Shown here: in pieces, positions 2,243-61,724 of the stretch | How the letters are laid out: each line of letters begins with the position of its first letter | Numbering within the stretch: the first letter of the stretch is position 1 | Source of the DNA: Ascoidea asiatica JCM 7603 | Taxonomy: Eukaryota; Fungi; Ascomycota | Direction: 5' to 3' | NCBI GenBank assembly: GCA_001600695.1 | Contig: BCKQ01000003.1 | Coordinates: 433,423 to 497,422 of the forward strand | Length of the DNA stretch: 64,000 nucleotides | Notes under the pieces: generated by a model | The model's input: the letters and a program-made list of their open reading frames with translations, nothing else | Told to the model about the DNA's origin: nothing | Database searches by the model: none | Translations under genes and position numbers: made by a program

Positions 2243-4762
2243 ATGAGATCCTTGAAGAGAGGAAGTCCTGATGGTTTCGCGTTTATGGAGACTAGAGAGC
2301 TTCATCATTCAAAAACCAGATATCAGACCCAAAATATTAAAATGATTTCGAATGGCAAATTATTCAAAGCGTCAGCAAAAGAATTAATTAAATTTATTAA
2401 TAATGCTAAAAAAAGAAGGTTGATGATTAATTTGGAGCCTATTGATGAAGATATCTTATTGGAAGATAATTTATGGCAAAATTCAGATGATGAAGAAGAA
2501 ATTTATTTGAGGTTGAAACATATTTTGACTCCAAGAAGAAATCAGAAGGATGTTGTTTATGATCAAAAGAAATTATTTGATTCTTCCAATTATAGGGCAC
2601 ACCAAGAACCAAAAGTTATTCTTTCGAAAAATAAAGTAGTAAAAATTCCAATAAGGCTGAAGCCTAATACATCTTCAACGCCCCTATCCAAACATTCAAA
2701 GTCTGTATCATCATCTAGTAAAAAGCTGAAGATTACCTTATCAACAAAAACGGATAATGGTAATAAAAGTTTGAAACCCATTACAAGCCATGAGAAAGAA
2801 TTAAAAGCAAATGATCATGATGATAAGATTGAAGACTATGAAACAACCAGAAAAAGATTAGAGGCAGTTGAAAAATCAAATATGGAAAGACTGAAAAGAG
2901 CCACCAAAAGAAGAAGGTTGTCATCGAATCCAATTCCACCTGATACTGAAGGGATAATAACCGAACTTCTTGATTCAGAAGCTTCTCCTACTAAACCAAT
3001 ATCATCTACAAGAAAAAAAAAAGAAAAAAAAGTAAAATTATTAGCTAATTCCCAAGTCGATCAAATCATCAAACCAACTATAAGGATGTCAAAGAGAATC
3101 AGTTTATCAAAAAAAAAACATGAAATCAACAAAGCTCCAATTATGACTATCAAAGAACGAGAAACGTTTTTAGAAAATATATATCAGAGAGTTTCTAAGC
3201 TAGTGGAAGAGAATGAAATTTTAGAAGATGCTGAAGCAGAAAAAAAAAGGTTAAGTTTACCAACTGGAGGAGGCAGAATTTATTATGGTAAGCCAATATA
3301 TAGAAAAGATATATTTTATGATTTATTGAATGCTATCTTTTCAAATGATCAAAAGGTTTTTACAAATTATTTTGAACCAGACTCTCCTATTAAATTAACG
3401 TTTTTTGATTTATATACTTTATCTCTTACTAATTGTTCAAAATGTCCTTTATATATTAAAGAAATAATTAAAGAAGATAGAAATATAGGTATGATGTTTG
3501 CAATGATTAATTTATTAGTAAATACAGGACTTTTAACTACAACAATAACTTTCAATCCTAAATCTCAGAATCTAAGAAGATTTTACAGGCCAATTCCTGT
3601 TTTTCAAGCTGGTGAAATTACTGAAAATCAATCAAGATGCTTGTTTGAAACTAAAAGGAATAAGAGTTTTTTGATTACAATATATAAAAAAAATGAACCG
3701 AAAAATTTCAGAGAATATTTTGAAATAGTTAAAAAAAAAGTTAATTCTTTTCCAAATGTGAATCCAATTGCAATGCTTTTTCTTTTCAAAGATCAAAGTG
3801 AAGATTGGATCAAATATTGTTTTTCATCATTGATTCTAAAAGGTTCAAAGGAAGAAACTTTAAAATCCACTTCTACAAAACTTAAAAAAAGATCAAGTTT
3901 ATCGAAATCAACTGACGTTCCCTCGGTAAATTCAAATATTGAAAATGATAAATTTTCGTATAATATTTTAAAAGATTCGATTAATGCTCCATTTAGATCT
4001 ATTTTTTTTGCTAGAGAAAAAACGCCTTCAAGTAGAGCTAAAAGATTTTTATGGATTATGTACTCATTTTTAGAAACTAATTTAACACCAACAGAATTAG
4101 AATCAAATCCTTTCAAAGATAGGGGAAGCATTTCATTTCCAAAATATCGTAATATTGTTAGTGGAAAAGAATATGATATAGATACACCTGAAGAAATTGA
4201 ATTTGGTAATACTAGGCAAAAAGTGAGAGAATCCATACAAAAAGTGAGCGAGCAAGAAGAAAAAATAAGAAACAAGTGTTCATTATATAATATGAAAGAT
4301 CAAAGTACTAAAAATAATACTGAAAAAAATGAAAATGAAAAAAAAAAGTTTCTGAAATCATCTGAAGAATCAAAAGTCAAATCTCTGAGAATTGAATTAG
4401 AAGTGGTTAAACTAAAAGACACAAATTCAATGGATAATAAATCAATGGATAATAAATCTGTGATACTGTTTCATAACGTAAAGCATCCTAATAAACGTAA
4501 GCTAAAAAAGATAAAAAATAAAAAATATAAGTTTGAAGTATCAACTAAATTACCATTAAAACCTAGAATCAACTTGTCGAATAGTCTAGAAAAATTAGAT
4601 TACGTTGGTCCATCTAACCTTAGAGTTGTGGGTTATTATAAAGAGAATAAATTATCTGAAAAATTATGGATGGAAGATAAAGAAAAGGAAATAAGCGTTG
4701 CTTCTAATAAGATTTATAAGCCTTTAAAACTTAAAGTTCCCAAATTGAATAAAAAAACTTAG
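2243..4762 (+). CDS. IES1: INO80 complex subunit Ies1-like protein
   Basis: GKPIYRKDIFYDLLNAIFSNDQKVFTN, LTFFDLY, NLLVNTGLLTTTITF, SRAKRFLWIMYSFLETNLTPTELESNPF and YDIDTPEEIEFG match the Ies1 conserved domain. Long Lys-rich extensions at both ends. Confidence 0.8.
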   Translation: MRSLKRGSPDGFAFMETRELHHSKTRYQTQNIKMISNGKLFKASAKELIKFINNAKKRRLMINLEPIDEDILLEDNLWQNSDDEEEIYLRLKHILTPRRNQKDVVYDQKKLFDSSNYRAHQEPKVILSKNKVVKIPIRLKPNTSSTPLSKHSKSVSSSSKKLKITLSTKTDNGNKSLKPITSHEKELKANDHDDKIEDYETTRKRLEAVEKSNMERLKRATKRRRLSSNPIPPDTEGIITELLDSEASPTKPISSTRKKKEKKVKLLANSQVDQIIKPTIRMSKRISLSKKKHEINKAPIMTIKERETFLENIYQRVSKLVEENEILEDAEAEKKRLSLPTGGGRIYYGKPIYRKDIFYDLLNAIFSNDQKVFTNYFEPDSPIKLTFFDLYTLSLTNCSKCPLYIKEIIKEDRNIGMMFAMINLLVNTGLLTTTITFNPKSQNLRRFYRPIPVFQAGEITENQSRCLFETKRNKSFLITIYKKNEPKNFREYFEIVKKKVNSFPNVNPIAMLFLFKDQSEDWIKYCFSSLILKGSKEETLKSTSTKLKKRSSLSKSTDVPSVNSNIENDKFSYNILKDSINAPFRSIFFAREKTPSSRAKRFLWIMYSFLETNLTPTELESNPFKDRGSISFPKYRNIVSGKEYDIDTPEEIEFGNTRQKVRESIQKVSEQEEKIRNKCSLYNMKDQSTKNNTEKNENEKKKFLKSSEESKVKSLRIELEVVKLKDTNSMDNKSMDNKSVILFHNVKHPNKRKLKKIKNKKYKFEVSTKLPLKPRINLSNSLEKLDYVGPSNLRVVGYYKENKLSEKLWMEDKEKEISVASNKIYKPLKLKVPKLNKKT

Positions 4763-5536
4763 ATACTAGGAATATAATCTGCCATCTGAAATAAAAAGAA
4801 AACTTTTACATATATCATTACTTTCTTTCATCTTCTTTTATTTCTATATTTACTTATATCTCTTAATTTTTTTTTCATTTGTATTTTTCAAAGAGAATTG
4901 TTTTTTTTCAAATTTCGATTTCAATTATTTTGATCCTTAGCATTTTATTATTTTGATCTTGTAACTTTATTCTGGATTTTTTAGCGTCTTATAATTCTCT
5001 CTTATTCTTTTATTTTTTTACTTTTCCTTCTACTTTTCTCTTACAATTCTTTCATAATTTTTTATAATTTTTTGTAAATTTTTGTAAATTTTTGTAATTT
5101 CGAATGTATTTTTAATAAAAATTGAATTTTTCGAAATGAATTTGTTGGAGACCAGTTTTGCGGATGTTCTGTTTCTGTGTTTGAAACGCGTAATTTTTTA
5201 TTTTTTAATTTTTCAGTTGTTTTTAGTGTATTTTTTTTTAGTCTTTTACAATTGATTTGGTTTTGTTTGACTACGATTTTAAAAAAGATTTATTTTTGAA
5301 ATATGATTGATTTAATGAAGTATATGACAAATTTAACAAGATAAAAAGGAATAAATAAGAAAGAAAGATAAAAAGAAAAACCGATATACAGTTTATATAT
5401 ATATATATATATGTACCAAATTAGATATAAAATATAAAAAAATTAGAAGATTAGAATATTGAATTATAAAAACTTTTAGGTTGAGATGAAAAAAAAAAAT
5501 GAAAGAAAATTAAAAAAAAGAAGTAAATGAAATAAA

Positions 5537-7138
5537 TTAATAAGTTGGACCAGCTTTAATAACTTCTGGAGTACATTCATCGGAATAAATTTTGAAATTT
5601 TCATCAAATAATTTAGCTAAAGAAGTTAAATTATTTTTATAAGAAGATTGAGAAGTTGTAAATTTGAAAGGATTTAATAATTCTTTTGGTACTGAAGAAC
5701 AATTTTTTGGAACTTGTAAATTAAAAACAGGAAAGTTTTCAAATTCTTCATTTGCTAAAGAACCATTATGAATTGCATCTAAAATAGCTCTTGTATGTTT
5801 TAAAGGACATCTTTTACCACCTTTTGCAATAGAAGCACCAATCCAACCAGTATTTAATAACCAAGCATTAGTTTTATGTTGAGACATTTTTTCAGATAAC
5901 ATTTTAGCATATTTCATTGGATGTAAAGCTAAAAATGGTTGACCAAAACATGAAGAAAAAGTTGCTTGAGGTTCAGTTACACCTTGTTCAGTACCAGCCA
6001 TTTTTGAAGTATAACCAGAAATAAAATGATACATAACTTGTTCAATTGATAATTTTGAAATTGGAGGTAAACAACCTCTTGCATCACAAGTTAAAAGAAT
6101 TATATTTGAAGGATGTTTATCAGCTAAACATGGGATTTTTGCAGTTGGAATATATTCAATTGGATAAGCACATCTTGTATTTTGAGTTACAGTTATATCA
6201 TCATAATCCACCATTCTATTTAAAGGATTATAAACAACATTTTCTAAAATTGAACCAAATTTAATTGCATTAAAAATTTCAGGTTCTTTTTCATCACTTA
6301 AACCAACACATTTTGCATAACAACCACCTTCAATATTAAAAACACCATTATCAGACCAACAATGTTCATCATCACCAATTAATAATCTATTTGGATCAGC
6401 AGATAAAGTTGTTTTACCAGTACCAGATAAACCAAAAAATAAAGTAACATCATTATTTTGAATACCTTGATTTGCAGAAGAATGTAAAGTTAAAATATTA
6501 TAATTTACTGGCATTAAATAAAACATTACAGTGAAAATTCCCTTTTTCATTTCACCAGCATATTCAGTACCTAAAATTACCATTTCCATTGATTTAAAAT
6601 TAATTTCAACAGAAGTTGAAGAAGTCATACCATCAGTAAAAGAATTTGCAGGAAATTGACCAGCATTATAAATTGTAAAATCAGGTTTAAAATCTTTTAA
6701 TTCATCTTCAGTTGGTTTTATTAACATATTTCTCATAAATAAAGCATGATAAGCTCTTGCACAAATAATTCTAATTTTTAATCTATATTTTGGATCCCAA
6801 CCTGCAAAAGCATCAACAACAAATAATTTTTCTCTTGTTTTTAAATAATCTAAAGATCTTGATTTTGAAATATTCCAAGTTCTTTCACTAACTTTTTTAT
6901 TTACTGGACCCCACCAAATATTTTTATTTGAAGAAATTTCATCAACAATTCTTTTATCTTTTGGAGATCTACCAGTTTTATCACCAGAAAAAGCCATTAA
7001 AGCACCAGTTGAAGAAATACAAGTACCTTTTTCTTTTAAACCATCTTCATATAAAATTGGAATTGGAGAATTATGACGAATTATAGTTTCTTTAGATAAA
7101 CCTAAAGTTTGTTTAAAATTTGATTCAAATGTAGACAT
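5537..7138 (-). CDS. PCK1: Phosphoenolpyruvate carboxykinase (ATP)
   Basis: KTGRSPKDK, YAGEMKKG, P-loop FFGLSGTGKTTLS, LIGDDEHCW and FNIEGGCYAK motifs. Confidence 0.99.
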   Translation of the reverse strand: MSTFESNFKQTLGLSKETIIRHNSPIPILYEDGLKEKGTCISSTGALMAFSGDKTGRSPKDKRIVDEISSNKNIWWGPVNKKVSERTWNISKSRSLDYLKTREKLFVVDAFAGWDPKYRLKIRIICARAYHALFMRNMLIKPTEDELKDFKPDFTIYNAGQFPANSFTDGMTSSTSVEINFKSMEMVILGTEYAGEMKKGIFTVMFYLMPVNYNILTLHSSANQGIQNNDVTLFFGLSGTGKTTLSADPNRLLIGDDEHCWSDNGVFNIEGGCYAKCVGLSDEKEPEIFNAIKFGSILENVVYNPLNRMVDYDDITVTQNTRCAYPIEYIPTAKIPCLADKHPSNIILLTCDARGCLPPISKLSIEQVMYHFISGYTSKMAGTEQGVTEPQATFSSCFGQPFLALHPMKYAKMLSEKMSQHKTNAWLLNTGWIGASIAKGGKRCPLKHTRAILDAIHNGSLANEEFENFPVFNLQVPKNCSSVPKELLNPFKFTTSQSSYKNNLTSLAKLFDENFKIYSDECTPEVIKAGPTY

Positions 7139-7200
7139 TTTTAATTATATAATAATTTTAGTTAATAATGATTAGATAAATAATATAAGTAATTTAGTTA

Positions 7201-7245
7201 TAATATAATATAATATAATATAATATAATATAATATAATATATAA
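7201..7245. repeat. (TAATA)n microsatellite in the PCK1 5' region
   Basis: Visible pentamer array. Confidence 0.85.
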
Positions 7246-7799
7246 TAATAATAATAATAGTATTAGAAGATAATAGAAGAATTAAAATTAAAATTAAAAT
7301 TAAATTTGTAAAATCCGGGGAAAATATAAAGATATTTATATCAAATATTCGTTTATGAATAAAAAAATTTAAAACAAATAAAATAATAAAATTCAATTCT
7401 TTTAATTGAATTAATTGAATTAAAAGATTTAATTGGAAATAAGAAAATTATTTGAAATTTTACTTACAAATCGAGATAAAAAAAAAAAAAAAAAAAAAAA
7501 AAGGTTATAATCTATAAAATTTAGTAGAAAAGAAATAGATTTGATACAAAAAGATAAGAATTCATCGAGAATTTATTGTGGATTACGGTTGAATGTGGCT
7601 GAAAATAATGTTGGAAGATAGAAAAGATCTCGAGAATTCGCTTCTTGGACTGGTCAAGGAAACCATACATACTATTTAGTATGAGCAAAAAAAAGAAGCA
7701 GTCCATGGATTTGAGGGCGAGTTCAGATATAGTCAGAAGTAGAAAAGACTCCCACAAAAGCGCAATAAACGCAGGAAGAAAAGCTGGCACATAGTTAAT

Positions 7800-10669: not shown

Positions 10670-11884
10670 ATGCAAATTTCTTCAACTTTAATAATCTCTT
10701 TATTAACTTGTGCTAAATATGTTTTATCTCATGGTATTGTTCAAGATTTAAAAATTGGTGATACTTGGTGGACTGGTTCTTTACCATATACTGATCAATA
10801 TGCTTCTCCAATACCTGAAAGAATTGTTTGGTCTTTTTTCACTGCTGGTAATAGTCCAATAGAAGATGTTACTTCAAATGATATAGTTTGTAATGTTGAT
10901 GCAAAATCTGCTGCTTTAACTGCTTCTATAAATGCTGGTTCTGAAATTACAATGTATTGGACAACATGGCCTGATTCTCATAAAGGTCCAATAATGACAT
11001 ATTTAGCAGATTGTGGTGGTGATTGTTCAAATATAACTCCTTCATCATTATCTTGGTTTAAAATTGCTGAAGATGGTTATGATTCTTCAACTGAAACTTG
11101 GGCAACTACAACTTTAATTGCAAATAATAATTCATATACTTTCACAATTCCTTCTGATATTTCTGCAGGTAATTATATATTAAGACATGAATTATTAGCT
11201 CTTCATAGTGCTGGAACTTCTGGTGGTGCTCAATTTTATCCAATGTGTGCTAATTTAGATATTACTGGTACTGGTACTGCAACTCCAAGTGGGGTTTCAT
11301 TTCCTGGTGCTTATTCTGCTTCTGATCCTGGAATTTTAGTTAATATTTATAATGGTTTAACTTCTTATACTATTCCAGGTCCAGATGTTTATGGTTCTTC
11401 ATCTTCTGCAACTACCGCTGCTGCTGCTGCTGCTGCCAAATCTTCCTTCGCTTCTTCTGTTTCTTCTGTTTCTGCAGCTGTTGAATCTGAACCTGCTACT
11501 TCTGCTACTTCTGCTGCTGCAATTACCACTAGTGCTACAAGTGCTGAAAAAGTTTCATCATCTGCAATTGATGAGTCTTATGGTACAAGTGAAGCAGAAG
11601 AAACTTCTATTGGTTCATTTACTACTGCACAAACTTTAAAAACTTTAACAGCAGCTGTAACAACTGCAACAACAACAACTCCAATTGAATCAACATCTGC
11701 TGTTGCTTCTATTGCTACTGCAGGTACTTCAACAATGTCAATTGCTTCATCATGTTATTCAAATTCTGTTGAATTTAATAAATGTCTTGATGATGTTAAT
11801 GTTTGTATTGCATCATCTCAAAAAGCTGGTGGTTATTCTGGTAGTACATGTGAAGCAAAAAGAGCTTCTTGTCAAATGTGTTAA
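10670..11884 (+). CDS. Secreted lytic polysaccharide monooxygenase, family AA9 (GH61), with Ser/Thr/Ala linker and C-terminal 6-Cys module
   Basis: A 20-aa signal peptide is followed by His1 (HGIV, codon 10730-10732). Second His in WPDSHKGPIMTYLA, then GNYILRHELLALHSA, GAQFYPMC with the axial Tyr, and FPGAYSASDPGI / YTIPGP. Confidence 0.96.
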   Translation: MQISSTLIISLLTCAKYVLSHGIVQDLKIGDTWWTGSLPYTDQYASPIPERIVWSFFTAGNSPIEDVTSNDIVCNVDAKSAALTASINAGSEITMYWTTWPDSHKGPIMTYLADCGGDCSNITPSSLSWFKIAEDGYDSSTETWATTTLIANNNSYTFTIPSDISAGNYILRHELLALHSAGTSGGAQFYPMCANLDITGTGTATPSGVSFPGAYSASDPGILVNIYNGLTSYTIPGPDVYGSSSSATTAAAAAAAKSSFASSVSSVSAAVESEPATSATSAAAITTSATSAEKVSSSAIDESYGTSEAEETSIGSFTTAQTLKTLTAAVTTATTTTPIESTSAVASIATAGTSTMSIASSCYSNSVEFNKCLDDVNVCIASSQKAGGYSGSTCEAKRASCQMC

Positions 11885-19604: not shown

Positions 19605-21131
19605 AGTTTTATCATTTTCTAGTCAATTTGTTCAATTAATAATTGCTGAGTGTGATTGAATTCAAAGTAATATTTGAAAGTCTTTTTAAGAGAAAGAATA
19701 TCGAAATAAATATAAGAAAGAATTGAATAAATTGAATGAATTGATTGAAATGATTAAAATGATTAAAATAAACAAATAAAGGTTTAAAAATAAGCCCAAA
19801 AATAAATAAAAAGCTGGCCATCTTCAGCCGCACCGGATTTGATTGTCCGCACGCAGGATATTTAAGGATATGTTAAAAAATATAAAAGTACAACCCTGAC
19901 TAATGGATACACGGATTATTCGTTAGTGGCGGAAGTCTAAAAATCAAGAAAACTTTAATCGAAATCCTAAATTTTACGTTTATTTGAAGAAGGTGGAATT
20001 TTTGAGCATTTTCACTTAAAAAATATATTTATTTGCTATAAAAGAAAAATGCATAAAAAAAAAAGTAATATTCAAAAACTTGTCAGACAGCCATTATTAT
20101 CCATCCAATTAATTACTCCTTCCGAAAAAGTATGTAATAATGGATTGAAATCATTGCTCCTTTCTTAAGATATCAACTCAATAGAATATCTTTACAAACG
20201 AAAGGCAAATTAAAAACAAGATATCCAGACCAACAAAGGACCACAGATAAACTAATTGAAATTCTCATTCAATGGATATAATGGTATTCATCTCATCATC
20301 CAAGTTGGATTTGATGGCTCTTTTGAAGAATCAAAGAGAGACGTGACCTATAGAAATGATCCTACTATTGAATTTGTTAGTGATTGAAATTATCTAGTGT
20401 AATAATAATTATTATTTGAACCATATGGTAAGCTACTTACTGAAGTACGTCGACAAAGAAAAAAAGAGAAATAAATTAAATAAAAATGATGAAAATAGCT
20501 GTGCTTTTATACCAAGAATTCCATCTTTGTTCAAAGAAGATCATTCCATCAGTGACTTACCCAGGCTTTGTTATTTTCCTGTCTTTGAAATACTTCTATT
20601 GACTCCTTTTTTAGGTCTTTGATTTAATTTTTTTTGTCTTCTTTTTCTTTCTAACTTTACTTTAATTTTTATTTATTATCGTTGGAATGAAGATACAAAA
20701 ATTACCAAATAAATGTATATTTGATACGGAAATAAATACCTAGCTGAAAATAAATTGAAAATTAAAATGAATTAAAAATAAAATCAGTTTTGAGCATTCT
20801 TTTTCATAGTATTCTTTTTAACACAAATCATATAATCAATATCATATTATTCAAATGACAGCCATTTATCAAGCCATTATATCTCAATTACAAATTTATA
20901 CCTATTACTCAAGTAATATAAGTATCTGAATATATTTAACAATAAATCACTGAAGAATACCTACTCACCAAATTTTTTAATTTTCAATTTATGATATTCA
21001 ACTTATATCAATGACTTCGTATTATCACAAATTGAAGAAGTTCTACATAAGATTTTTCGAAATTTAGTTTTCATTTTCTAAAAGTATGTGTTTATACTAT
21101 ATTATATTATATGATACTATTTTTTAAACGC

Positions 21132-40008: not shown

Positions 40009-42596
40009 TCAGAACTGTTCTCTTAGTGGGGATTTCAAATATAAGAAACTGTAGTTATTGGAATCGCCAGCACATTCATTTAGTCGTTTTTGGATAAGAG
40101 TTTTTATTTGATTTAATGTCGTATCTATAAACTCGTAGTAAGAGTAAAGTAAGTTACTATTATTTGTATATTTTCTTCTAGATAAAATATCAACTATAGT
40201 GTCCTGGTCTATAAATTCAAAGATATACTTATCGCTGCTTATCTCAATGCTGTTTTCCAAATTTGGGTTCAATTTACCATTTCCTATTAATCTCAGCACG
40301 TAGTGTAATAGGCAGGGATTTGCCTTACTGACAGTATTTACTTTGAGATGTTTTTTTATTAGACCAAGAGTAACTGTCAAATTGTTTATCGGATTTTCTT
40401 TTCTTATTGTCTCACTATCGAGTGGCAAATACCCACACTTTTTAAAAGACTTGACAATGGATTCTGATTTGATTTTTGATCTTGTAACATTGAGCAAATT
40501 TAGAAATTGTATTTTTTTGTCAGAATCTGCTAATGAGTTATAATTTTGTGCTACCTTACCCCTGCATGCCTTTAGAACATGGAAGTAATTAACGTCCAGT
40601 GGTTGCAAGAAACCGGAGCTATGAGGTGGTAATAATAGTAAGATTATATTTTCGGAGAGGGCAAGATCAATAATGGAAATTGTAATATGGCTTCTATGTG
40701 CATCAGATAAAAGGAGATTGTGATTAGACTCTTCCACAAGAGTTCTCTTTTTAGCTGCATTAATAAATCAACAAACCATTGAACATATATATTGGTTGTG
40801 ATAAAGCCTGATTTTGTTTTATGTATTTTCCACCCCGAAGACGATAAAAACAGCTTTACATTATTTTGAATTCTCATATTAGTCGAGTTATTTTTAAATA
40901 TAAAGTGGGGTGCAACCTGAAAGCCATCAGCGGCAATCGCGTCTATAACAGTTGTAATGGATTCTTGAGGTATAACGGTAGATAACGATATATTGGGTCA
41001 GAATCATTTATGGCTACTATCCATTTTAATTACCCTCTCGTCAACATTATATGTTGGAAATAATAGACATCTATATATGCTAGGGCATATATTGGTACTA
41101 ACACCATAGGTGGTGAAGGTCTAAAAGACACGTATCTATAGTAAACGTAAAAGAATTATGTATTATATAATGTGTTTACCCTATGTATAATTATGCATAC
41201 AGATTCATAATTAGGCATAAATATACATATTGTTGCATAAAGTTGCATTAAGTTGCATCAAGAATACATCAATTTACATGACCTTGCATGAGTCTGTGTA
41301 CAGGTACACAGATAGTCGGATATTATGTGATATTCCAGTCACATGTCATAGGTCCTGTGTGCTTACGTTAGGTATAGGGTACAAAGTAGAAAAGACCTTG
41401 AGATTGGTACCAGCCATAGTCGTACAACCTTTAACAGCATATTAACGCTAAGCCACTCGGTACGAGGAGAATTAAAGAGGAGTTAGGATTTAGCATCTAT
41501 CCGGATAGAAGTTAAATCCGTAAGACCAATCGGATCCAGGCAGGGACGCCTTCTGGATGGCTGGATGGCTGGATTGGCTAAGCCTAGTTTCATGTGAGAT
41601 AAGGTATAATTCTCACTGCGTATACCAAATTGTCTCGGAGTAAACAGGAGACTAGAGGAGATAGTCCGGTAAGGGATCTATTCCGAGTACGGATTCGGGA
41701 TCAAAGACTATTCCTGGCAATTAGTGCGATTATCTACCCCACTGGAAACTGGGCTGATTGGTTTTACTATGGTAAAATTGAAATGTGAATTTCAGTTGAT
41801 TTCTAATCAAGTTTTCAACCTTTTTTACAAGGTAAACTTGATTCCCACCCTGATTCTACGAAGGAATCCTGGGACTTTTGGGAATTCCCAAGAATTCTCA
41901 ATAGTTCTGCGGGACCCCGTAGGAATCCTGAATTAATATAAAAGGAATCGATTTCCTCTTATTTTTTTATATAATTTATTTGGTTTTCTTTTTAGATCAT
42001 CTATTAGCACGAGTTAATTGATTAATACATAGTTTGTAAGTACGTAAAATTTATATATTCGATTTTGTAAAATGAATGAAAATTCACAACATTATAGAGG
42101 TTTTCAGCCATTCTATTAAATTCACCAAAAAAGCCATTAATGTCAGAATAAAATGATGCAATTTGTTGTTCATTGATTTATCTAAATCGTTTTCTATAGC
42201 GAATGACTGTGCTACCCTTTTGAACTGCTTATTATTTTTATAGACAATACCAATAACCTTTTTTTCTTTTATTTCCGATGTCCAGCCTTTCGCCTCCCAA
42301 AGACATTTAACTAACGCCATTGTATCGGATAGTGTTAAAAACTTGTTGAAATTTTCAAAACAGTTTATAACATCCTTCAAATACTTTGCTTGATGGTCTT
42401 TTATTTTCTTTTAACTATTGGGTTTATCTCTAATTGTCGGGGCGTCTAGAAATTTTAATTTTTTGAAAAATGTGCAGCTACTTAACCCATATTTATTGAT
42501 AACCTCTACTGGTTTTTGTTTGTTACCATTCGGTACTGGTTGACGGTACTCTGCTATAGCTTTTTTGTAATTACTTTCTCGTTCCTCTAAGTTCAT
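40009..42596 (-). pseudogene. DDE_1 (DD35D) transposase pseudogene
   Basis: N-terminal HTH-like MNLEERESNYKKAIAEY...KYGLS; catalytic YNVDE (~41036-41050), LLLSDAHRSH and LPPHSSGFLQPLDV with 35 residues between the last two Asp. Broken by stops, frameshifts and an LTR insertion. Confidence 0.9.
41052..42091 (+). mobile_element. Solo LTR (1040 bp) inserted in the transposase
   Basis: TGTTG...CAACA termini, perfect 5-bp TSD TTATA (41047-41051 / 42092-42096), TATA-like TATAAAAGG near 41937, homologous to 60697-61719. Confidence 0.95.
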
Positions 42597-43074
42597 GATT
42601 AATTTTTGAAATCTGGTTTTATTGTAATTGAAGTAGTTGTTTATTATGAAACAAGTTTGTTTTCTAAACAATAAATGATTTATCTTTTTCTAAATACTGA
42701 CGAATTAGGTGAATCTCGGATAGAATTTAAATTGTAGTTGGGAGGGTTTTTGAAAATTTATTAGTTACTTTTTGAATAGTTATGTATATTTCAAAGCTCT
42801 CACCATTCAAGTACCTGACGCGTCTACGAGTACTTGTCGAATAAAATAATATTACGTGTTTAGCCCTTCAGTTTTTGATTTTATTCAAAGTTTCTGCTGC
42901 GACGCGTGACTGATTATTCCTCCATTCACAACGAATTCTGAGGGCCCAAAACACTCCTTTCACCAGGGACCTATGGTAGATAATGATTTTGGTATTAAGA
43001 TAATTGTTTATGAGCATAAGTTCATTGGTGAAAATTACGAAAAACCTGGTTCTGTGTGTGTAAAACCTAGATTA

Positions 43075-43896
43075 GGTTGTGATTGTAGTTCGAACGAAAT
43101 ATCAAATTATTACTAAGAAGATATCTAATTCGAATTATAAACTATTGTTAATTAACATATCAAAATATATAGAAATTATATAAAAAATATTGGAGCTAGC
43201 TGCCCTATTTATATTAGTGGAAAATAGGAGCGGGTAACCCATCTTAAGAATAATAGTGTAAAATTAGTATTTGAAAGCTCACTTCCCATACTTACGGAAA
43301 GATATAGAGTAAAGTTCTGTTCTAGATGACACTACGCCATTCTGAGAACAAATAAGTAGATTCCAGTACATTCGAGAAAAACACGGAACTTCGAAGAAAC
43401 AATAAATATTGCAGTCCCAGAACGTTCCAGTGCATTTAAGATGCACAAGGAAGTTCTAAAAACGCAATAGAAGGTAGTGATGGAACAATCTATGTAATCT
43501 TGGAAACTCTAAGAATAGCCTAGAATATTAGTCGACAATTCTTATAAAAGAATAAAATGATTAACAATCCCTACTACAACTCTAATTGATTTGTCCGCAT
43601 TACCAATTCGCGGACCAAAATTTAAAGTTTCCCGGCTTCACGAGTAATGGAACAAAACATTTAGTATCGTGAGAAAGTTCTGGGTGCCAAATGACAATTT
43701 CTGGGTACTTTGTAATAATTACAAAGTTATTAAGAAATACCTAAACGGTATTCTGCCGTTCTGTACAAAAGTAAATGTTGTTATCAAATAAGTAGCTATG
43801 ATAAAAACTTTGTACGAATTACTCTGAGCGCACTACAGCACGATCGTTTGTCTGATGATGCTTCTCTATGGAGAATTTAGCAGAGGATATAAAGTT
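43075..43896 (-). mobile_element. Degenerate/truncated LTR-like segment of a related family
   Basis: Starts GGTTGTGA (cf. TGTTGTGA at 60697), has similarly placed AAATTATATAA and TTTATATTA motifs, and 43849-43896 is directly homologous to LTR sequence 46826-46871. Boundaries approximate. Confidence 0.4.
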
Positions 43897-44244
43897 AACA
43901 AATGATTTTGTTCCTAATGGGATTATATTTCTTCCACTAATTGTCTTCTTTGTTACAAAATGATAAGGTATATCATTAATGATTTGTTTATACCTATTAG
44001 TAGCCCTCATTATAGTTCACTCTAAACAGAATAAAAACCAATGCGCTGGTAATGAAGCATGTGTTGGAAATACTAGAGATCTATATATGGTAGGGCATAT
44101 TTTAGTACTAACAGCATAGCTGGTGAAGGTCTAAACGACACGTACCTGTAATAGAGGTGACAGAGTCATATATTATATATAAACTTTATATCCTATGTTC
44201 GATTCTCCATAGAGAAGCATGATCAGACATACATATATATTGTC
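43894..44244 (+). repeat. Inverted repeat, left arm (partner 46811-47160)
   Basis: 43914-44177 is the exact reverse complement of 46877-47140 (264 bp, compared by eye); imperfect extensions on both sides. Confidence 0.95.
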
Positions 44245-44249
44245 CAATA

Positions 44250-44600
44250 CTTAAAAGGGTGGCAAACAAAAACTTCCAAGAAGATTGACAGATATGACTG
44301 CTACTCCAATAAGCTTCTTTAGAATCTCATGAGAAATTGCTAGGAACCTTTGCATTATAAACATAATCTAAATCATTTGAGAATTTCCCGAGACAATCAG
44401 TAATCTTTTTAGTAATAACATTGACATCAGAATTGGAATTTGAATGTTGAAAAGCAGAAGTATCAGTTGGAATTAATCTAGTTTGAATTAAACTAATAAG
44501 ATTCAACGGAGCTTGATTATAATCTATTACAGTTGGAGTAACAGGAGATGAAGAAGCATTTTGCACTTGAAAGTTAGTCATAAGAAGATTCAATTCCTTA
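44250..44600 (-). pseudogene. Possible retrotransposon gag-like relic
   Basis: Protein-like reading frame (ORF 44327-44593, continuing past a stop) among LTR relics; no diagnostic motif. Confidence 0.25.
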
Positions 44601-46232
44601 ATGTGGGTTAGGCATGATAAATAACTAATTGAAGATTAAATATTAATATGTGAAGATGGTTAATAAAAATTTTATCATTAAGTATATGAAAGATAATTCG
44701 TTGAGAATTGGAAGGATTAATTCAATTACAACTTTGAAGATTTTATGTGACACAATAAAATTAGATAGATGCAGTAACAGGGAATTGTGAATGAATTATT
44801 AATGAACGAGTCAGTTAGAATGATTGTAGTTGGATTTGAAAAATATTTTAATATTTTTAATAGTGGGAAATGCTGTTTCATAACAGTAAATATTTTCATA
44901 AAATAACGTCCTGAAATTATTGGTTATGAACACAGTTCTTACGACTTTTGTTTTATTTTCTGTAAATGTCACCAAAAATGATTAACAAAACTACTATATG
45001 CTTTAGTTGTTTTAGTTTAAATTTAAACTATGAGAAAATAGTTAATTTTAATCAGGAAAAACAAAGAATTGATCAATTAGTAGATAAATAATAAATTCAA
45101 GGCACTGGTATATGTCAGGGAATGTGATTAGGGATTACAAATAGAAAATTTCAGTTGACCAGTAAAATAGATGGGAGTCTAACCGTACGACTTTTATGTA
45201 CTCTTCAAACTCGGTAACCCATACTCAGAGACATACCTTTCTTTAAATATTCATATCACAATCTTATATACACCGTCATAGAACACTAATTCAATTATTA
45301 AAACCATATAGTAAAAATTTGCCACCGAGAGGCTTTGCAGAACTGGCTGGTGAATAGACCGTGAGTATTGTAGACATCAGCACCAAGGTTCTCATGCATT
45401 AGAGAATTATTACTGTCATGTGAGTCTAATAAAATTTGAAATTTTACAACTTTTAAAAGTAAATAATAAAGGAACTGATAAACTAATAAAAGTAAAATTA
45501 CTTTGTAACTTGATTTATTTTATTAAACCAATAGCAAAGCAATTAAAGAAGAAATCAATAAGCAATTGTTGACTTCTTTGTTTTGAAAAGGATATTTTTT
45601 TTTTTTATGTATTTGTTGGTTGATTTAACTCAGTTATCTTCACAATTTGTGGAGGATTAATCTTTAATTTAAGAATTTGAAATTGGTTTTGAGTTCAATA
45701 CCAATATGATTAAAATTTATTGAAGTCTAATTTTTAATTCAATAATTGCAATTGATTTTGACTTGACTACCAATATGATTACTATTTCCAATTTATTGAG
45801 TTTTAATTTCATGAATATGCATTGAATTAAAATAAGTTTATTAGTTTATAAAATATTAATTGGATTGAATTTCAATTTTATGAGTATTATTGATGGATTA
45901 TCCTTTTGACTGTGTAATAAATAAAAGGTAATTTCAAATGAAGTTGAAGAATTTTAAAGCACAAATTTTTCAAATAGATAAACTTTTTGAACCATTTTAA
46001 AATTCAAATAAAATCTACTAGAATATTAGTAACGATAAACAAAAGAAACATGTAAATTTTAGCTAAAATCACCATCGATTTCCCAATTATTACTTAAAGT
46101 TTAATTAGAAATTTTGAGAAATATTTACAGCGATGAAGCAAGTAATGATGCTAATTTCTAATATCATTTAAATTAAGGATAATCAGCTTGACCTGTTTCT
46201 GAACCCGCAACAAGATCATAACCTTACATGGT

Positions 46233-46992
46233 TGTTGAAAAAGATCATAGATTCAACTCTATATAAAATTTAAAAGAGAAGAACAATTGAAGTTGTTGTA
46301 TGTTGCACTGACAGAATGAAAAGTTTGTCAGTGGAAAAAAGGGGTTGGCTCGGAACCTGTGTGAGTGTCTTCGGAAACCAGTGAACTTAATCATGGAGTC
46401 ACATCGTGTGGACAGCATGAGTCTGAATACGGATTCAGAAACCTTCAAGTATGGCATTCTTTTACACAAAAGAAGGCTTATGCAAAGCAACCAAACAGAA
46501 AGGGTCCCTGCGCCGATCCTACTGTCCTTGGGATTTAACATCTATCCGGTTAGGTGCTAAATCCTAACAGCTCTTTTTTTGCCGTATGGGCGAACTTAGC
46601 TTCAATGTGGGCTTGATGGTTTTGCGAGTATCGCTGATACTAAGCTCCGGATCTTTTCTCTTGTACACATCACCTTATGTAAGTCCACCTGTCCTATTCC
46701 ATGTTACTAGAATATCATATGATATGCGAATATGTGTGAAGCTCTTCCCGGATTGAAGCAAGGTCATGTGAATTAATGTATTCGCAAAGAAACTTAATAC
46801 AACTCTAATAGACAATAGATATGTATGTCTGATCATGCTGCTCTATAGAATCGAACATAGGATATAAAGTTTATTGTATAATATATGACTCTGTCACCTC
46901 TATTACAGGTACGTGTCGTTTAGACCTTCACCAGCTATGCTGTTAGTACTAAAATATGCCCTACCATATATAGATCTCTAGTATTTCCAACA
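46233..46992 (-). mobile_element. Solo LTR (760 bp), related subfamily
   Basis: TGTTG...CCAACA termini; its 5' ~500 bp aligns with the other two LTRs; imperfect TSD CATGG(T)/CATGC. Confidence 0.85.
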
Positions 46993-47160
46993 CATGCTTC
47001 ATTACCAGCGCATTGGTTTTTATTCTGTTTAGAGTGAACTATAATGAGGGCTACTAATAGGTATAAACAAATCATTAATGATATACCTTATCATTTTGTA
47101 ACAAAGAAGACAATTAGTGGAAGAAATATAATCCCATTAGCAGCAAAAGCATTTGTTAAC
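46811..47160 (-). repeat. Inverted repeat, right arm (partner 43894-44244)
   Basis: See left arm; spans the LTR end / integrase junction at 46992. Confidence 0.95.
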
Positions 47161-50100
47161 ATATTACTTGATTTGTCTAACGTTAATGGAAAAACTGTCG
47201 AACGAGTTTATTTAATGACATCCGACAAGGTATACGGGCATATTATTTATATTCCCTCTTTAAACAAGTATGTTGATACCAGACATATTTATGCAAGTAA
47301 TGAAAACTTTGATAGTGGTTGAAACTATGATAGGGTAATAATTTATGATATCATTTCCCAAAGGTTGTTAGCTCTGAATATGAAGAGAAACCACAAAAAG
47401 TAAATTATAATATATTTACTGGAGTAGAAGAAAATACGCCAACTGATGTAGAACATCATAAGACTTTACAACAAGGTCCATCAACTGTTATTCGTAAATT
47501 TCTTCAACAAGTAATGCAAAATTGAAGGTTGTTCCTGCCGAAATTGCAGCAAGTAATGTCGAAGAAGTTCAAAAACCTGTACATGAGATTATTATTAGAA
47601 GATGAGGAGGGAGCAGAACAAGAAAAACCTCAGGAAACAGATACTAACATGCAAGTAAAGGGTAGCATGAATCTCAAAAGCTTGTTAAATGATGTGGGAG
47701 TTGTAGTTATTTATTACGTTAAGGACCCAGGAGAATACTTATTGGAAACAAGTCCAATAATTATGAACTGTTTGGTGGTAAATGGTGTGAAGTCTAGCTT
47801 AGACAAAATACCAGAGAATATTGGAGAAACTATGACTTTAGGATTTGAGGAAGCTATTCAAAAAGTGTTGGCTATTATTAAAACAAATGGATCATTTGTT
47901 ATATTAAACAGTAACGATGTTCCTACCAGCATTAAGAAAAAAGCTATACCACTGTTATGGGGTTTTAATTTTAAAAAATCGGCTGTTGGTTGTACAACTA
48001 AAAAGGTTAAATTAGTTATTTCTGGTGATAAAGAAACAGATAAAAAATAGAAAACCTAGACCTACAAATCAAAAAATTGTGGTTTTAAATACAAAAGAAT
48101 CTGGTTAAGATGCAGCGAACCAAGATATTTAGATACAAATATGAAACATAATCAAATAAAATTATTATATAAGAAAAAATACAGAAATAGTATTAATTTA
48201 AATACTATTATTAATAAATTTACCTGCTCTTTGACAACTAAGGGTTCCACTTTAATTTCAAAGGCCGATCATAAAAATAATTTGCTAATTATTAATAATC
48301 ATAATTCAAAAGAAATATATGAAGAGTCAATATAGCACGATTCCATATGTCAAGATTCAATATGTATTCAAAATTATAGAATTGATAAAACAACTAAAGA
48401 TTCACTACAATTTGTTTCAAAAGTTGACAAAACTTAAATTTTAATTTCAAAAACTTCCTTAATAACTATTAATATAAAACATTTCAGCCATTCAAAACAA
48501 GAAATTTATAATATTAATTTAAATAATCAAATTTGTCAAGAGAAACGTGGTAAAATAATTGAACTATGATTAGATTATTTTCTTACTACGATAGTGGTAA
48601 ATAAAGTATCATTGAAAATTCCAACGTATTTATTCAAACATTAGTTAATGGTACAAAAAAGGTCTTAGATTATATATATTTTAATTTTGAATGTCTATTA
48701 GACAGTTAACAAATGTTCCTATAATTATGAATTCCGAAGGGATTTGGATGGTATGCTGTTACTCTTAACTTATTATCAAGATGATTTAGAAAAAAAAAAA
48801 GGATAATGAAAAGAATAAATAGAAAATGGGTTGAAATATATTATATATAACAACTGTAATTCAAATCTGATAAATATCAATTTCAAATTCAATAACAAAA
48901 GAATGTGAAATAATGAAAAATGATTTATAAAATAGAATATATATCAAACTAAAAATTAAACATTAAATGCATAAAATTCTGAATTACTGGTAACTAGTCT
49001 TGCAGAAAACACATTAATCTGCTAATTTTATAAAAATCAATTATTAAAATCCTACTACGCTCTAATCAAAACCTGCCCTTCACTCCAAAAAAATCCATTA
49101 AACCATTATTTAAATCATAGTGAGTTGCTTCTATAATTGAAAAAAATTGTTAAGTATATTTCTTTGATTAAGTTTATTTAAACTTTGTTTTGGACACAAT
49201 ATGCATTCATAAAAGGTGAGGTATGACATCCGGTAATAATGGTGAGTCCATCTGAGTATCATTCAAAAATCCATGAAACTTCAAGCAAAAAGCATACTTC
49301 GTTCAACAGCTAGCCCTTAATGCTCCGAACCTTACGATCCAGTTTCACCATGTGCGCCATTTTAGTACGTGTAAGCGATAATTTCCGTTATCGCTTATTG
49401 CAAACGACTGTTGGTGCTCCCACGATAACATATCCATTTGGTTACAGCATCAGCAACTTTACATACTTTGTCAAGGCATTAACAAGAAACGAATGCGATA
49501 TATAGGTGGGGAAAGAAGAGACCTCGAAAAATGACAAAGTCGCATTTTTTTGAACTTCCAAGCTGGATCCACAGAAGCTAGACTTGAAAGTTGTGCTAGT
49601 AAGGGTTGAAAATTGTAAGAAGATTAACCGTTATCTCGAGGTAAATGTCTACCAGATAACTTTAAAACAGTATTATAGGAGGTTAGATTTAGTAAAGTTA
49701 TAAAAACACAATCATACTATCATACTCAAATTTCTTCATTAAATTTGGAATACTTGATTTTAACTGTCGACTATGAGCGTAGTTCAAAAAATGTGCAAAC
49801 AATAAATTAGATGACAACAGTTTTCAAGAGGTTGGTTAGACTCGATACACATTATTACATTCGCGATCTTCATAATGTTCGGCAATACTGCCCATGCTTC
49901 GCTCAAAAAAACAGATAGGCCTGCATTCCTAAGTCGCTAAAAATATGTTGAAATTGATAGAAATTCAAAACATTAGTAGTTTAAAATAGCTACAAAAAAA
50001 TATGTCTGGAAGGAAGATAATGAGCCTCAAAAAGGCGCATTTACCACTAGTAAATGTGGTAGGATAAACCTATCTGCCACTTACTTCTTTATGTCGGCCT

Positions 50101-60696: not shown

Positions 60697-61719
60697 TGTT
60701 GTGAATTTTCATTGATCTTACGAAATCGAATATATAAATTGTACGTACTTACAAACTATGTATTAATGAATTAACTGCTAATCGATGATGTAAAAAAAAA
60801 CTAAATAAATTATATAAGCAAAAAGAGGAAATCTATTCCTTTTATATTAATTCAGGATTCCAACGGGGTCCCGCAGAACTATTGAGAACTCTCGGGAATT
60901 CCCAAAAGTCCCAGGATTCCTTCGTAGAATCAGGGTGGGAATCAAGTTTACCCTGTAAAAAGGGTTGAAAACTTGATTAGAAATCAACTGAAATTCACAT
61001 TTCAAATTTACTATAGTAAAACCGATCAGCCCAGTTTCCAGTGGGGTAGATAATCGCACTAATTGCCAGGAATAGTCTTTAAAGCCGAAGCCCCGAGTCG
61101 GAATATATTCTTATGGGACGTGCTCCACTTGTCTCCTGTGTAATCCTACCCGATTCGCCAACCGCACTGACAATTATACCTTATCTTGCATTAAACTAGG
61201 CTTAGGAAACCACCCAGAAGGCGTCCCTGCCTTGATCCGATGGGTGTTCCGGATTTAACATATATCGGGATAGACACTAAATCCAAACTCCATTTTTATT
61301 CTCCTCCTACCTAGTTGCTTAGCTTTAATATGCTCTTAAAGGTTGTACGACTATGGCTGATACCAATCTGAAGGTCTTTTCTACTATGTACGCTATACCT
61401 AACGAAAGCGCACGTGACCTATGCCATGTGACTAGAATAAGATTGTATCTGACTTTCTGTGTAGCCGTACACAGAGTCTTGCAAGGTCATGTGAATTGAT
61501 GTATTCTTCAGGCAACGTAATGCAACTTTAAGCAAAAATATGAATATTGATGGCTAATTATGCATATCTATGCAAAATTGTTCATGATGTATACCAATTA
61601 TTGATTAATACATGACCTTGTTATGTCTACTATAGACACGTGTCTTTTAGATCTTCACCACCTCTGGTGTCAGCACCAATATATGCCCTAGCATATATAA
61701 ATCTCTATTATTTCCAACA
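60697..61719 (-). mobile_element. Solo LTR (1023 bp), same family as 41052-42091
   Basis: TGTTG...CAACA termini, perfect TSD ATAAC (60692-60696 / 61720-61724), full-length homology in inverted orientation. Confidence 0.95.
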
Positions 61720-61724
61720 ATAAC

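Follow-up and report, generated by a model that had tools for sequence, protein, structure and literature searches.

Inverted repeat (IR)-type yeast centromeres, those of the Komagataella phaffii and Candida tropicalis type, have inverted arms of about 2–3.5 kb around a nonrepetitive, centromere-specific core, with one comparable unit per chromosome. Within the Ascoideales, putative centromeres are marked by Copia/Ty5 clusters (10.1101/2025.04.25.647736; PMC13148404), and the centromere cores of S. schoenii have been defined as AT peaks (PMC13148404). Inverted repeats also flank the flip/flop MAT region of Ascoidea rubescens (PMC6692504). In S. cerevisiae, fold-back hairpins form with loops of up to thousands of nucleotides (PMC7467729), and inverted templated insertions arise in which one end is synthesized and the other end-joined (PMC11724301). 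Long palindromes are unstable, and secondary rearrangements stabilize them (PMC7467729).

Here, we describe an inverted repeat in a 64-kb stretch of Ascoidea asiatica DNA (the window). The repeat consists of 355 bases from a dead retrotransposon, present again in inverted orientation 2.6 kb away; we think it probable that this copy was made during repair of a break, and that the arms were later partly recopied.

Geometry of the repeat and its recovery in short reads

Pairwise alignment confirmed the arms (43894–44249 and 46806–47160) over 357 columns, with a spacer of 2566 bp between them (44245–46810). A repeat finder paired 43894–44177 with 46877–47160 (284 nt, 99%) and recovered the continuation of the arm as a match of 44206–44249 with 46806–46849 (44 nt, 89%). 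Eleven of the 357 columns differ, corresponding to 10 events; eight of these columns fall within the inner 72, three within the outer 20, and none within the central 264 bp, where the left arm is the reverse complement of the right:

43914–44177, minus strand: perfect core of the left arm (alignment; single unitig at about 2x depth)
46877–47140, plus strand: perfect core of the right arm (alignment; unitigs)

A perfect inverted match of 264 bp cannot have arisen by chance. With 10 events placed uniformly, a run of at least 264 has P = 1.5e-5, and the clustering of differences at the arm edges is nonrandom. The arms, identical center and mismatched edges recorded in the initial annotation were thus reproduced by both the repeat finder and the alignment.

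Long-read assemblies can contain inverted chimeras and over-polished repeats, and either a chimeric fold-back read or the polishing of two copies to identity could yield such a structure. We therefore give the unitigs from three short-read runs: X1 and X2, both of which may come from the source sample, and X3, which comes from a different sample and study. In every run the 264-bp core is one unbranched unitig, with a depth of 104 (X1), 162 (X2) or 94 (X3) against about 47–53 for the flanks. Single-depth unitigs from all three runs span the left outer (43224–43943), left inner (44148–45324) and right inner (45295–46906) junctions. The right outer junction is spanned in run X2 (47111–48500); no bridging record is listed there for X1 or X3, from which nothing can be concluded. 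Read depth, which the initial annotation had proposed as the check for collapse, reveals none, since the core has about twice the flanking depth in two studies and the junctions are bridged. As far as unitigs can show, assembly collapse or chimerism is excluded, and an artefact of assembly or polishing, already largely refuted, deserves next to no weight. The unitig graph is identical for either orientation of the spacer, the word length being shorter than the 264-bp core. In run X3, SNPs at 46808 and 46840 make the right arm match the left; conversion would explain them, but so would ordinary mutation in the lineage of the reference.

Composition of the arms, the spacer and the surrounding island

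What are the arms made of? In each, the final ~190 nt of an LTR of ~1040 bp (family L) run straight into 165 nt of integrase sequence of the Ty1/copia type. The features of the locus are, in order:

43846–43896, plus strand: L-e, 51 nt that repeat, in inverted orientation, part of the LTR segment of the left arm itself, pairing with 44172–44232 (repeat finder: 61 nt, 84%)
43894–44055, minus strand: outer left arm, a 165-nt Ty1/copia integrase segment at pol residues about 338–393 (tblastn)
44056–44249, minus strand: inner left arm, final ~190 nt of the family L LTR, natural terminus ...TTTCCAACA (comparison of L copies)
44245–46456, minus strand: most of the spacer, nt 1–2190 of a 6286-bp Ty1/copia-type element, family X (copy comparison)
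46457–46995, plus strand: L-c, 3′ half of an L-family LTR, about nt 480–1040 (L homology)
46806–47160, plus strand: right arm, LTR nt about 838–1040 plus 165 nt of integrase (repeat finder, alignment)
46996–48042, plus strand: E1, an old Ty1/copia fragment extending from the C-terminal part of integrase as far as the beginning of reverse transcriptase (tblastn)

Twelve L copies share the terminus ...TTTCCAACA and have unrelated flanks, and LTR copies elsewhere align to 46819–46995 only. Integrase homology, detected by tblastn with the 1082-aa pol of L054, starts at about 46993–46996; on the domain map of this pol, the left-arm integrase segment is flanked by the rve core on one side and the SH3-like domain on the other. 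A genome search found the LTR-end/integrase junction just twice in 20.3 Mb, both times at the inverted repeat. Since the arm crosses this junction, it is a DNA-level duplication rather than two independent LTR insertions, a distinction already drawn in the initial annotation and borne out by the L copies, which stop at the terminus where the integrase follows.

The right arm is the original copy and the left arm its derivative, because on the right the LTR extends to 46457 and E1 to 48042. E1 covers pol residues about 338–689, with a weak SH3_retrovirus match; on its left the L LTR breaks into it, and on its right it ends abruptly at 48042. L-e is closest to the left-arm LTR, with 45/51 positions shared as against 42/51 for the right-arm LTR, and is weakly similar to other L copies, suggesting a snap-back addition to the outer end of the left arm. 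Its junction shares 3 nt (GTT/AAC, 43894–43900) with the integrase end. A foldback transposon or MITE, represented by the 387-bp unit 43846–44232 with its 61-nt inverted ends, was considered and rejected, as the genome search finds the arm at the two repeat positions only.

Family X enters the spacer with its 5′ LTR (46224–46456), followed by the leader and gag side; a full copy carries RVT_2 and rve, and the spacer part is 76–80% identical to the copies on C7, C4, C3 and C18. Position 46456 is a natural terminus, the flanks there differing in four copies, and because L homology resumes immediately after it, X integrated into the L-c LTR. The other boundary, 44245, was rejected as a natural end since other X copies run past the matching point. 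The element is truncated there, at about nt 2190, and the left arm sits exactly where it stops. No other family X sequence was found in the window; missing from it are the remaining ~4.1 kb of the element, the LTR's 5′ half and the E1 sequence upstream. We rejected the possibility that the missing part of X was moved rather than lost, as the window holds no further X sequence or copia pol.

The rest of the spacer is ~350 nt of L LTR. Open reading frames in the spacer are short and without family match, and Rfam and tRNA searches of it were empty. The GC-richer stretch at 46300–46700 is LTR sequence; a structured RNA gene there was rejected when neither Rfam (at gathering scores and at E up to 5) nor ARAGORN gave a hit. 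As the spacer holds dead transposon sequence only, no function is implied.

The decayed surroundings noted at first reading are likewise apparent, the repeat lying in transposon debris. Beyond 37.1 kb, the only ORFs of at least 150 aa are two transposon fragments, and this gene-free cluster contains copia pol fragments, L LTRs and the X element. Genes to the left of the island, which include zinc-cluster factors, an LMBR1-like protein, an LRR protein, PEPCK and PABA synthase, gave no usable signal of centromere-linked synteny. L copies occur in direct, tandem and inverted arrangements; the ratio among neighboring copies, about 7 inverted to 4 direct, looks like what nested insertions would give by chance. 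Elsewhere in the genome, inverted pairs of L LTRs (C1, C41, C11 and C12) stop exactly at the LTR termini. The C1 and C41 pairs raised the possibility of an element bounded by long terminal inverted repeats, either DIRS-like or a DNA transposon; this was rejected, since L copies end in canonical ...CA with unrelated flanks and are arranged in all three ways.

Probable origin by fold-back repair and the alternatives

If the right arm is the source, how was the left arm made? The nesting of one sequence within another gives the order of events. An L-family LTR first inserted into the integrase gene of E1, an old Ty1/copia element, and the 6.3-kb copia-type element X then integrated into this LTR at about nt 480. 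A subsequent break inside X may have been repaired by fold-back or template-switch synthesis, in which the resected 3′ tail at X nt ~2190 folded back 2.6 kb onto its own strand and primed the synthesis of 355 nt (LTR nt 838–1040 plus 165 nt of integrase), the left arm. A second snap-back on the new strand would have copied the 51 nt at 43846–43896, and this end would then have been ligated to the opposite side of the break at 43845, at the cost of 4 kb or more of X, the LTR's 5′ half and upstream E1. A divergence of about 10–15% at the arm edges and in the 51-nt piece shows the event to be old. Much later, a gene-conversion (or crossover-associated) tract may have rendered the central 264 bp identical. 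That the arm centers have been homogenized was also the initial suggestion, and the edge-clustered mismatches fit conversion, which is read here from the pattern of differences. The inner junction at 44244/5 has a 4-nt microhomology, TATT, when the run X3 allele of 46808 is used, and given the 10–15% edge divergence, junction microhomologies of 3–4 nt cannot be distinguished from chance. No pre-rearrangement allele was found.

Several features resemble the fold-back and templated insertions of S. cerevisiae: an inverted copy of nearby sequence at a deletion junction (PMC7467729; PMC11724301), a further inverted piece of local origin, putative short microhomologies and, on this model, one synthesized and one joined end. 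Templated fold-back insertions in experiments are mostly 5–34 bp, however, whereas 355 nt with a 2.6-kb loop lies at the large end. Also unlike the S. cerevisiae cases, this would be an old natural event, with 10–15% divergence at the edges, in another yeast order, and its mechanism is deduced from sequence. The identical center and diverged edges resemble gene conversion between dispersed or inverted LTRs (concerted evolution), although the tract here crosses the LTR end into integrase, and the repeat unit is a duplicated junction rather than an LTR.

Two other origins share parts of this scheme. The same ingredients would serve if fold-back had produced a long palindrome, with arms of at least 3 kb centered in X, that was nearly perfect and was later trimmed, by deletions in its unstable center and outer part, to 355-bp arms and an asymmetric 2.57-kb spacer; the instability of long palindromes and their stabilization through secondary rearrangements (PMC7467729) speak for this origin. 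Yet at least two extra deletions are needed, with breakpoints that spare the 51-nt snap-back piece right at the arm end, and an interstitial long palindrome also requires a secondary event that restores the chromosome; we consider this origin unlikely. It is also conceivable that a transcript begun in the L-c LTR (R-U5) read through into the E1 integrase, was reverse-transcribed, and was captured as filler at the break in X. The arm does continue across the LTR end into flanking DNA, it begins ~200 nt before that end, where the U3/R boundary could be, and reverse transcriptase typically leaves a snap-back end, compare the 51-nt piece. Ty cDNA has reportedly been captured at yeast breaks (Moore and Haber 1996; Teng et al. 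1996). But free cDNA could insert anywhere in 20 Mb, so that a copy 2.6 kb from its source favors a local template. Moreover, other 3′-terminal L fragments begin at varied LTR positions, and no RNA run contains the stretch; we regard capture of cDNA as quite improbable. As for a role of the locus as a source of hairpin RNA for RNAi, this was rejected, as no Piwi/Argonaute match was found in the genome and the stretch is in no RNA run.

Centromere or switch?

The initial annotation proposed that transposon debris had been co-opted here as an IR-core-IR centromere of the K. phaffii/C. tropicalis type or as a programmed invertible segment. Several observations invite this reading: the repeat lies in a transposon field of at least 27 kb without host genes, its arm centers are homogenized, Copia/Ty5 clusters occur at putative centromeres in the same order (10.1101/2025.04.25.647736; PMC13148404), and A. 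rubescens has an IR-flanked flip/flop MAT region (PMC6692504). The likeness to K. phaffii and C. tropicalis is one of geometry only, that is, inverted arms, a center of a few kilobases and a gene-poor region. The arms, at 0.36 kb (357 columns) rather than kilobase scale, have about a tenth of the length; in place of a unique core, the spacer holds a repeated retroelement in truncated form and half of an LTR; and the arm is unique to one locus in the genome, a search with its sequence finding no equivalent unit on other contigs. The gene-free field of nested, decayed Ty1/copia elements and solo LTRs does resemble the Ty5/copia-cluster centromeres of Debaryomyces hansenii, Scheffersomyces stipitis, Ogataea polymorpha and Saccharomycopsis fibuligera (10.1101/2025.04.25.647736), but this likeness belongs to the surrounding island, not to the inverted repeat. 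Centromeric Ty5/copia clusters would be expected singly on a chromosome; the contig, which may not be a whole chromosome, has at least one other transposon-rich zone, with further L and X copies at about 15–99 kb. The island is also GC-richer than the neighboring genes, in contrast to the AT-peak cores of S. schoenii (PMC13148404). For a switch, the comparison is with the MAT regions of O. polymorpha or A. rubescens; the spacer here contains no gene or RNA family, and hence no gene whose orientation could matter. Functional co-option, whether as a centromere or as a switch, finds no support here, and we regard it as very improbable. More improbable still is the specific proposal that the repeat, its center recently homogenized, recombines actively, so that the 2.57-kb segment flips in the population and marks a Cse4-bound core of this chromosome's centromere, an IR-type centromere born from retrotransposon debris in the Ascoideales.

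Finally, we note what the locus offers if fold-back repair was its origin. Unless occupancy data say otherwise, this repeat adds nothing to centromere biology. It is a cleanly readable natural example in which four nested events (a copia element, an LTR insertion, a second copia insertion, and what was probably fold-back repair with deletion) can be ordered from sequence alone, followed by a putative conversion tract. An inverted repeat with a homogenized center in a yeast transposon island need not mean a centromere or a switch, a lesson relevant to scans for IR-type centromeres in unstudied yeast orders.

The inverted repeat and its surroundings

The repeat finder recovered the arms as two segments, 43894-44177 with 46877-47160 (284 nt, 99% identity) and, as their continuation, 44206-44249 with 46806-46849 (44 nt, 89%), which align as a single inverted repeat of 357 columns, 11 of them differing, around a spacer of 2566 bp. 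The differences are confined to the edges, eight within the inner 72 columns and three within the outer 20, so that the central 264 bp match perfectly; if 10 events were randomly placed, a clean run of at least 264 would have P = 1.5e-5. The initial annotation thus located and described the repeat correctly, although the arms extend five bases further inward than it proposed.

Logan unitigs from three sequencing runs were compared with 43000-48500. Runs X1 and X2 share a sample, from which the assembly may have been made, and X3 comes from a different sample and study and has its own SNPs. In all three, the 264-bp core is one unbranched unitig, with a depth of 104, 162 and 94 (X1, X2 and X3) versus ~47-53 in the flanks, indicating that each genome has two identical copies of the core. 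In each run, unitigs of single depth span the left outer (43224-43943), left inner (44148-45324) and right inner (45295-46906) junctions; the right outer junction is bridged (47111-48500) in X2, and the missing record for X1 and X3 is no proof either way. As far as unitigs can show, the repeat is therefore not an artefact of assembly collapse, for which a read-depth check had been suggested. Unitigs are blind to the orientation of the spacer, since the graph is the same either way.

Within the assembly searched (20.3 Mb, 71 contigs; window at C3:433423-497422, C3 being contig BCKQ01000003.1), positions 1-37.1 kb of the window hold long ORFs of the usual host-gene families, and from 37.1 kb to the window end the only ORFs of at least 150 aa are two transposon fragments. 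GC content is 0.28-0.36 in this island (37100-64000) versus 0.17-0.28 in the genic 1-37100. The genic part includes a fungal U3 snoRNA gene at 20078-20381 (-) (Rfam RF01846, 126.8 bits), whose central region has an insertion relative to the model, and an ORF at 10670-11884 (+) with a strong match to AA9 (GH61, lytic polysaccharide monooxygenase; Pfam E 3e-73), a family uncommon among budding yeasts.

Retrotransposon origin of arms and spacer

Features of the repeat and its neighborhood
41051-42091, minus strand: full copy of L, a ~1040-bp LTR family
43846-43896: part of the LTR segment of the left arm itself, copied in inverted orientation (repeat finder)
43894-44249: left arm
44245-46456, minus strand: nt 1-2190 of X, a Ty1/copia-type element, with its 5′ LTR at 46224-46456
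46806-47160: right arm
46996-48042, plus strand: E1, an old Ty1/copia fragment
60697-61722, plus strand: full copy of L

Searched as a whole (query 46800-47330), the arm matches the genome only at the two positions of the inverted repeat; the part at 46819-46995 matches at least 40 copies dispersed through the genome (76-83% identity), which spacer searches and comparison with individual loci assign to family L. Twelve L copies share the end ...TTTCCAACA but have unrelated sequence beyond it, which marks it as a true terminus of the LTR. Directly past it, the right arm is Ty1/copia integrase: a full element on contig C1 matches it at 67% in DNA from 46994 on, and protein homology begins at ~46993-46996. 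The 1082-aa pol of the full element contains Pol_BBD, gag_pre-integrs, rve, SH3-like and RVT_2 domains, in that order; residues ~338-393, which the arm covers, fall after the rve core and before the SH3-like domain. As initially proposed, the arm crosses an LTR-end/integrase junction, from which it follows that the arms are not two independent LTR insertions. At the right arm, the LTR extends leftward to 46457 (L nt ~480-1040) and the integrase runs on rightward as far as 48042, into the beginning of reverse transcriptase; at the left arm, the LTR is limited to nt ~838-1040 and the integrase to 165 nt. As the right arm alone continues into more of both, the left arm is a partial inverted copy.

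At the outer end of the left arm, the piece at 43846-43896 matches the left arm at 45/51 positions, the right arm at 42/51 and other L copies faintly, so it derives from the lineage of the repeat and not from another insertion. GTT/AAC is common to both sides of its switch point. A unique stretch of 276 nt separates it, on its left, from a ~490-bp repeat (43080-43569) that is probably a family of solo LTRs or MITEs, with >100 candidate genome copies at 85-88% identity and a unitig word depth of 1000-6000x.

The spacer from 44245 to 46456 matches copies of X (6286 bp, 233-bp LTRs, rve and RVT_2 domains) on contigs C7, C4, C3 and C18 at 76-80%. Position 46456 is a natural terminus, as four copies diverge there into different flanks, and 44245 is a truncation, as other copies run on past that point. 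L homology begins directly after 46456; X had therefore integrated into an L LTR. A search of the 64-kb window found no further X or copia pol sequence, so X lacks ~4.1 kb, the LTR its 5′ half and E1 its upstream part, none of it moved nearby. The presumed core is therefore non-unique sequence, and no gene or RNA family match was found in it.

Elsewhere, inverted pairs of the 1-kb L LTR lie on four other contigs, C1, C41, C11 and C12 (loci L061-L064; for example, L061, G000:C1:1937500-1946000, 652-1690 and 6756-7784), and their arms stop at the LTR termini. They are 84-98% identical with 1.7-6 kb between them; the similarity of some pairs, above that usual among L copies, points to conversion. 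Neighboring L copies form ~7 inverted and 4 direct pairs, as expected of nested insertions oriented at random. Locus L065 (G000:C26:4000-11000) has a direct repeat (1-1968 and 4468-6435; 1968 bp, 99.6%, period 4467 bp) that takes in a full L LTR and the sequence to either side of it. The arrangement resembles tandem copies of an L-LTR element whose 3.4-kb interior is non-coding.

Age, homogenization and formation

The arm edges are ~10-15% divergent and the 51-nt piece is 12% divergent from its template, whereas the two strains differ by ~0.4% in the region (7 SNPs in 1612 bp), so the duplication far predates the strain split. The perfect 264-bp center is the same in the two strains and forms one unbranched unitig at twice the depth, so it must be a much younger tract. 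This contrast with the edges supports the earlier proposal that the arm centers are homogenized, most simply by gene conversion between the arms or heteroduplex repair during crossover. X3 SNPs 46808 A>T and 46840 G>T give the right arm the base of the left, and SNP 44240 adds a difference, a pattern that fits patchy conversion or ordinary mutation alike.

How did the repeat form? An inverted copy of neighboring sequence, its template 2.6 kb away on the same strand, sits exactly at the X truncation; the left arm carries a further inverted piece from that template; junction overlaps are short, and material was lost between the two ends. A resected 3′ tail that primed by fold-back, followed by end joining, would yield this layout. 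In S. cerevisiae, the loops of fold-back hairpins can reach thousands of nucleotides (PMC7467729); in templated inverted insertions one end is synthesized and the other captured by end joining, and complex events often contain paired inverted pieces that come from a single locus (PMC11724301). With the X3 allele at 46808 taken as ancestral, four nucleotides (TATT) may overlap at the inner junction. Because at 10-15% divergence such overlaps are not distinguishable from chance, fold-back priming is an inferred step.

Possible roles

The initial annotation envisioned an invertible segment or a centromere core of the inverted-repeat type. The latter is improbable: the arms fall short by a factor of ten, a repeated transposon fragment makes up the core, and no counterpart of the arm exists at any other locus. 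The island is another matter. In the same order, putative centromeres are Ty5/copia clusters in S. fibuligera (10.1101/2025.04.25.647736) and 26-34-kb AT-rich regions with decayed copia remnants in S. schoenii (PMC13148404). The island could be such a copia-type region, as a property of the island and not of the repeat, although an AT peak is the core criterion in Saccharomycopsis schoenii and the GC-richer island is the reverse; C3 also carries L and X copies at ~15-99 kb. A hairpin-RNA role is unlikely, since a six-frame search of the whole genome found no Piwi/Argonaute domain, and A. asiatica JCM 7603 probably does without canonical RNAi.

A programmed switch is not supported either. The known Ascoidea flip/flop region is the MAT locus, with 2-kb inverted repeats (PMC6692504), whereas here nothing within or next to the spacer could respond to orientation; occasional flipping, if it occurs, would have little consequence. 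The inverted repeat is real, well supported and ordinary in origin, and we regard it as an old repair scar within a retrotransposon nest, its center homogenized later.
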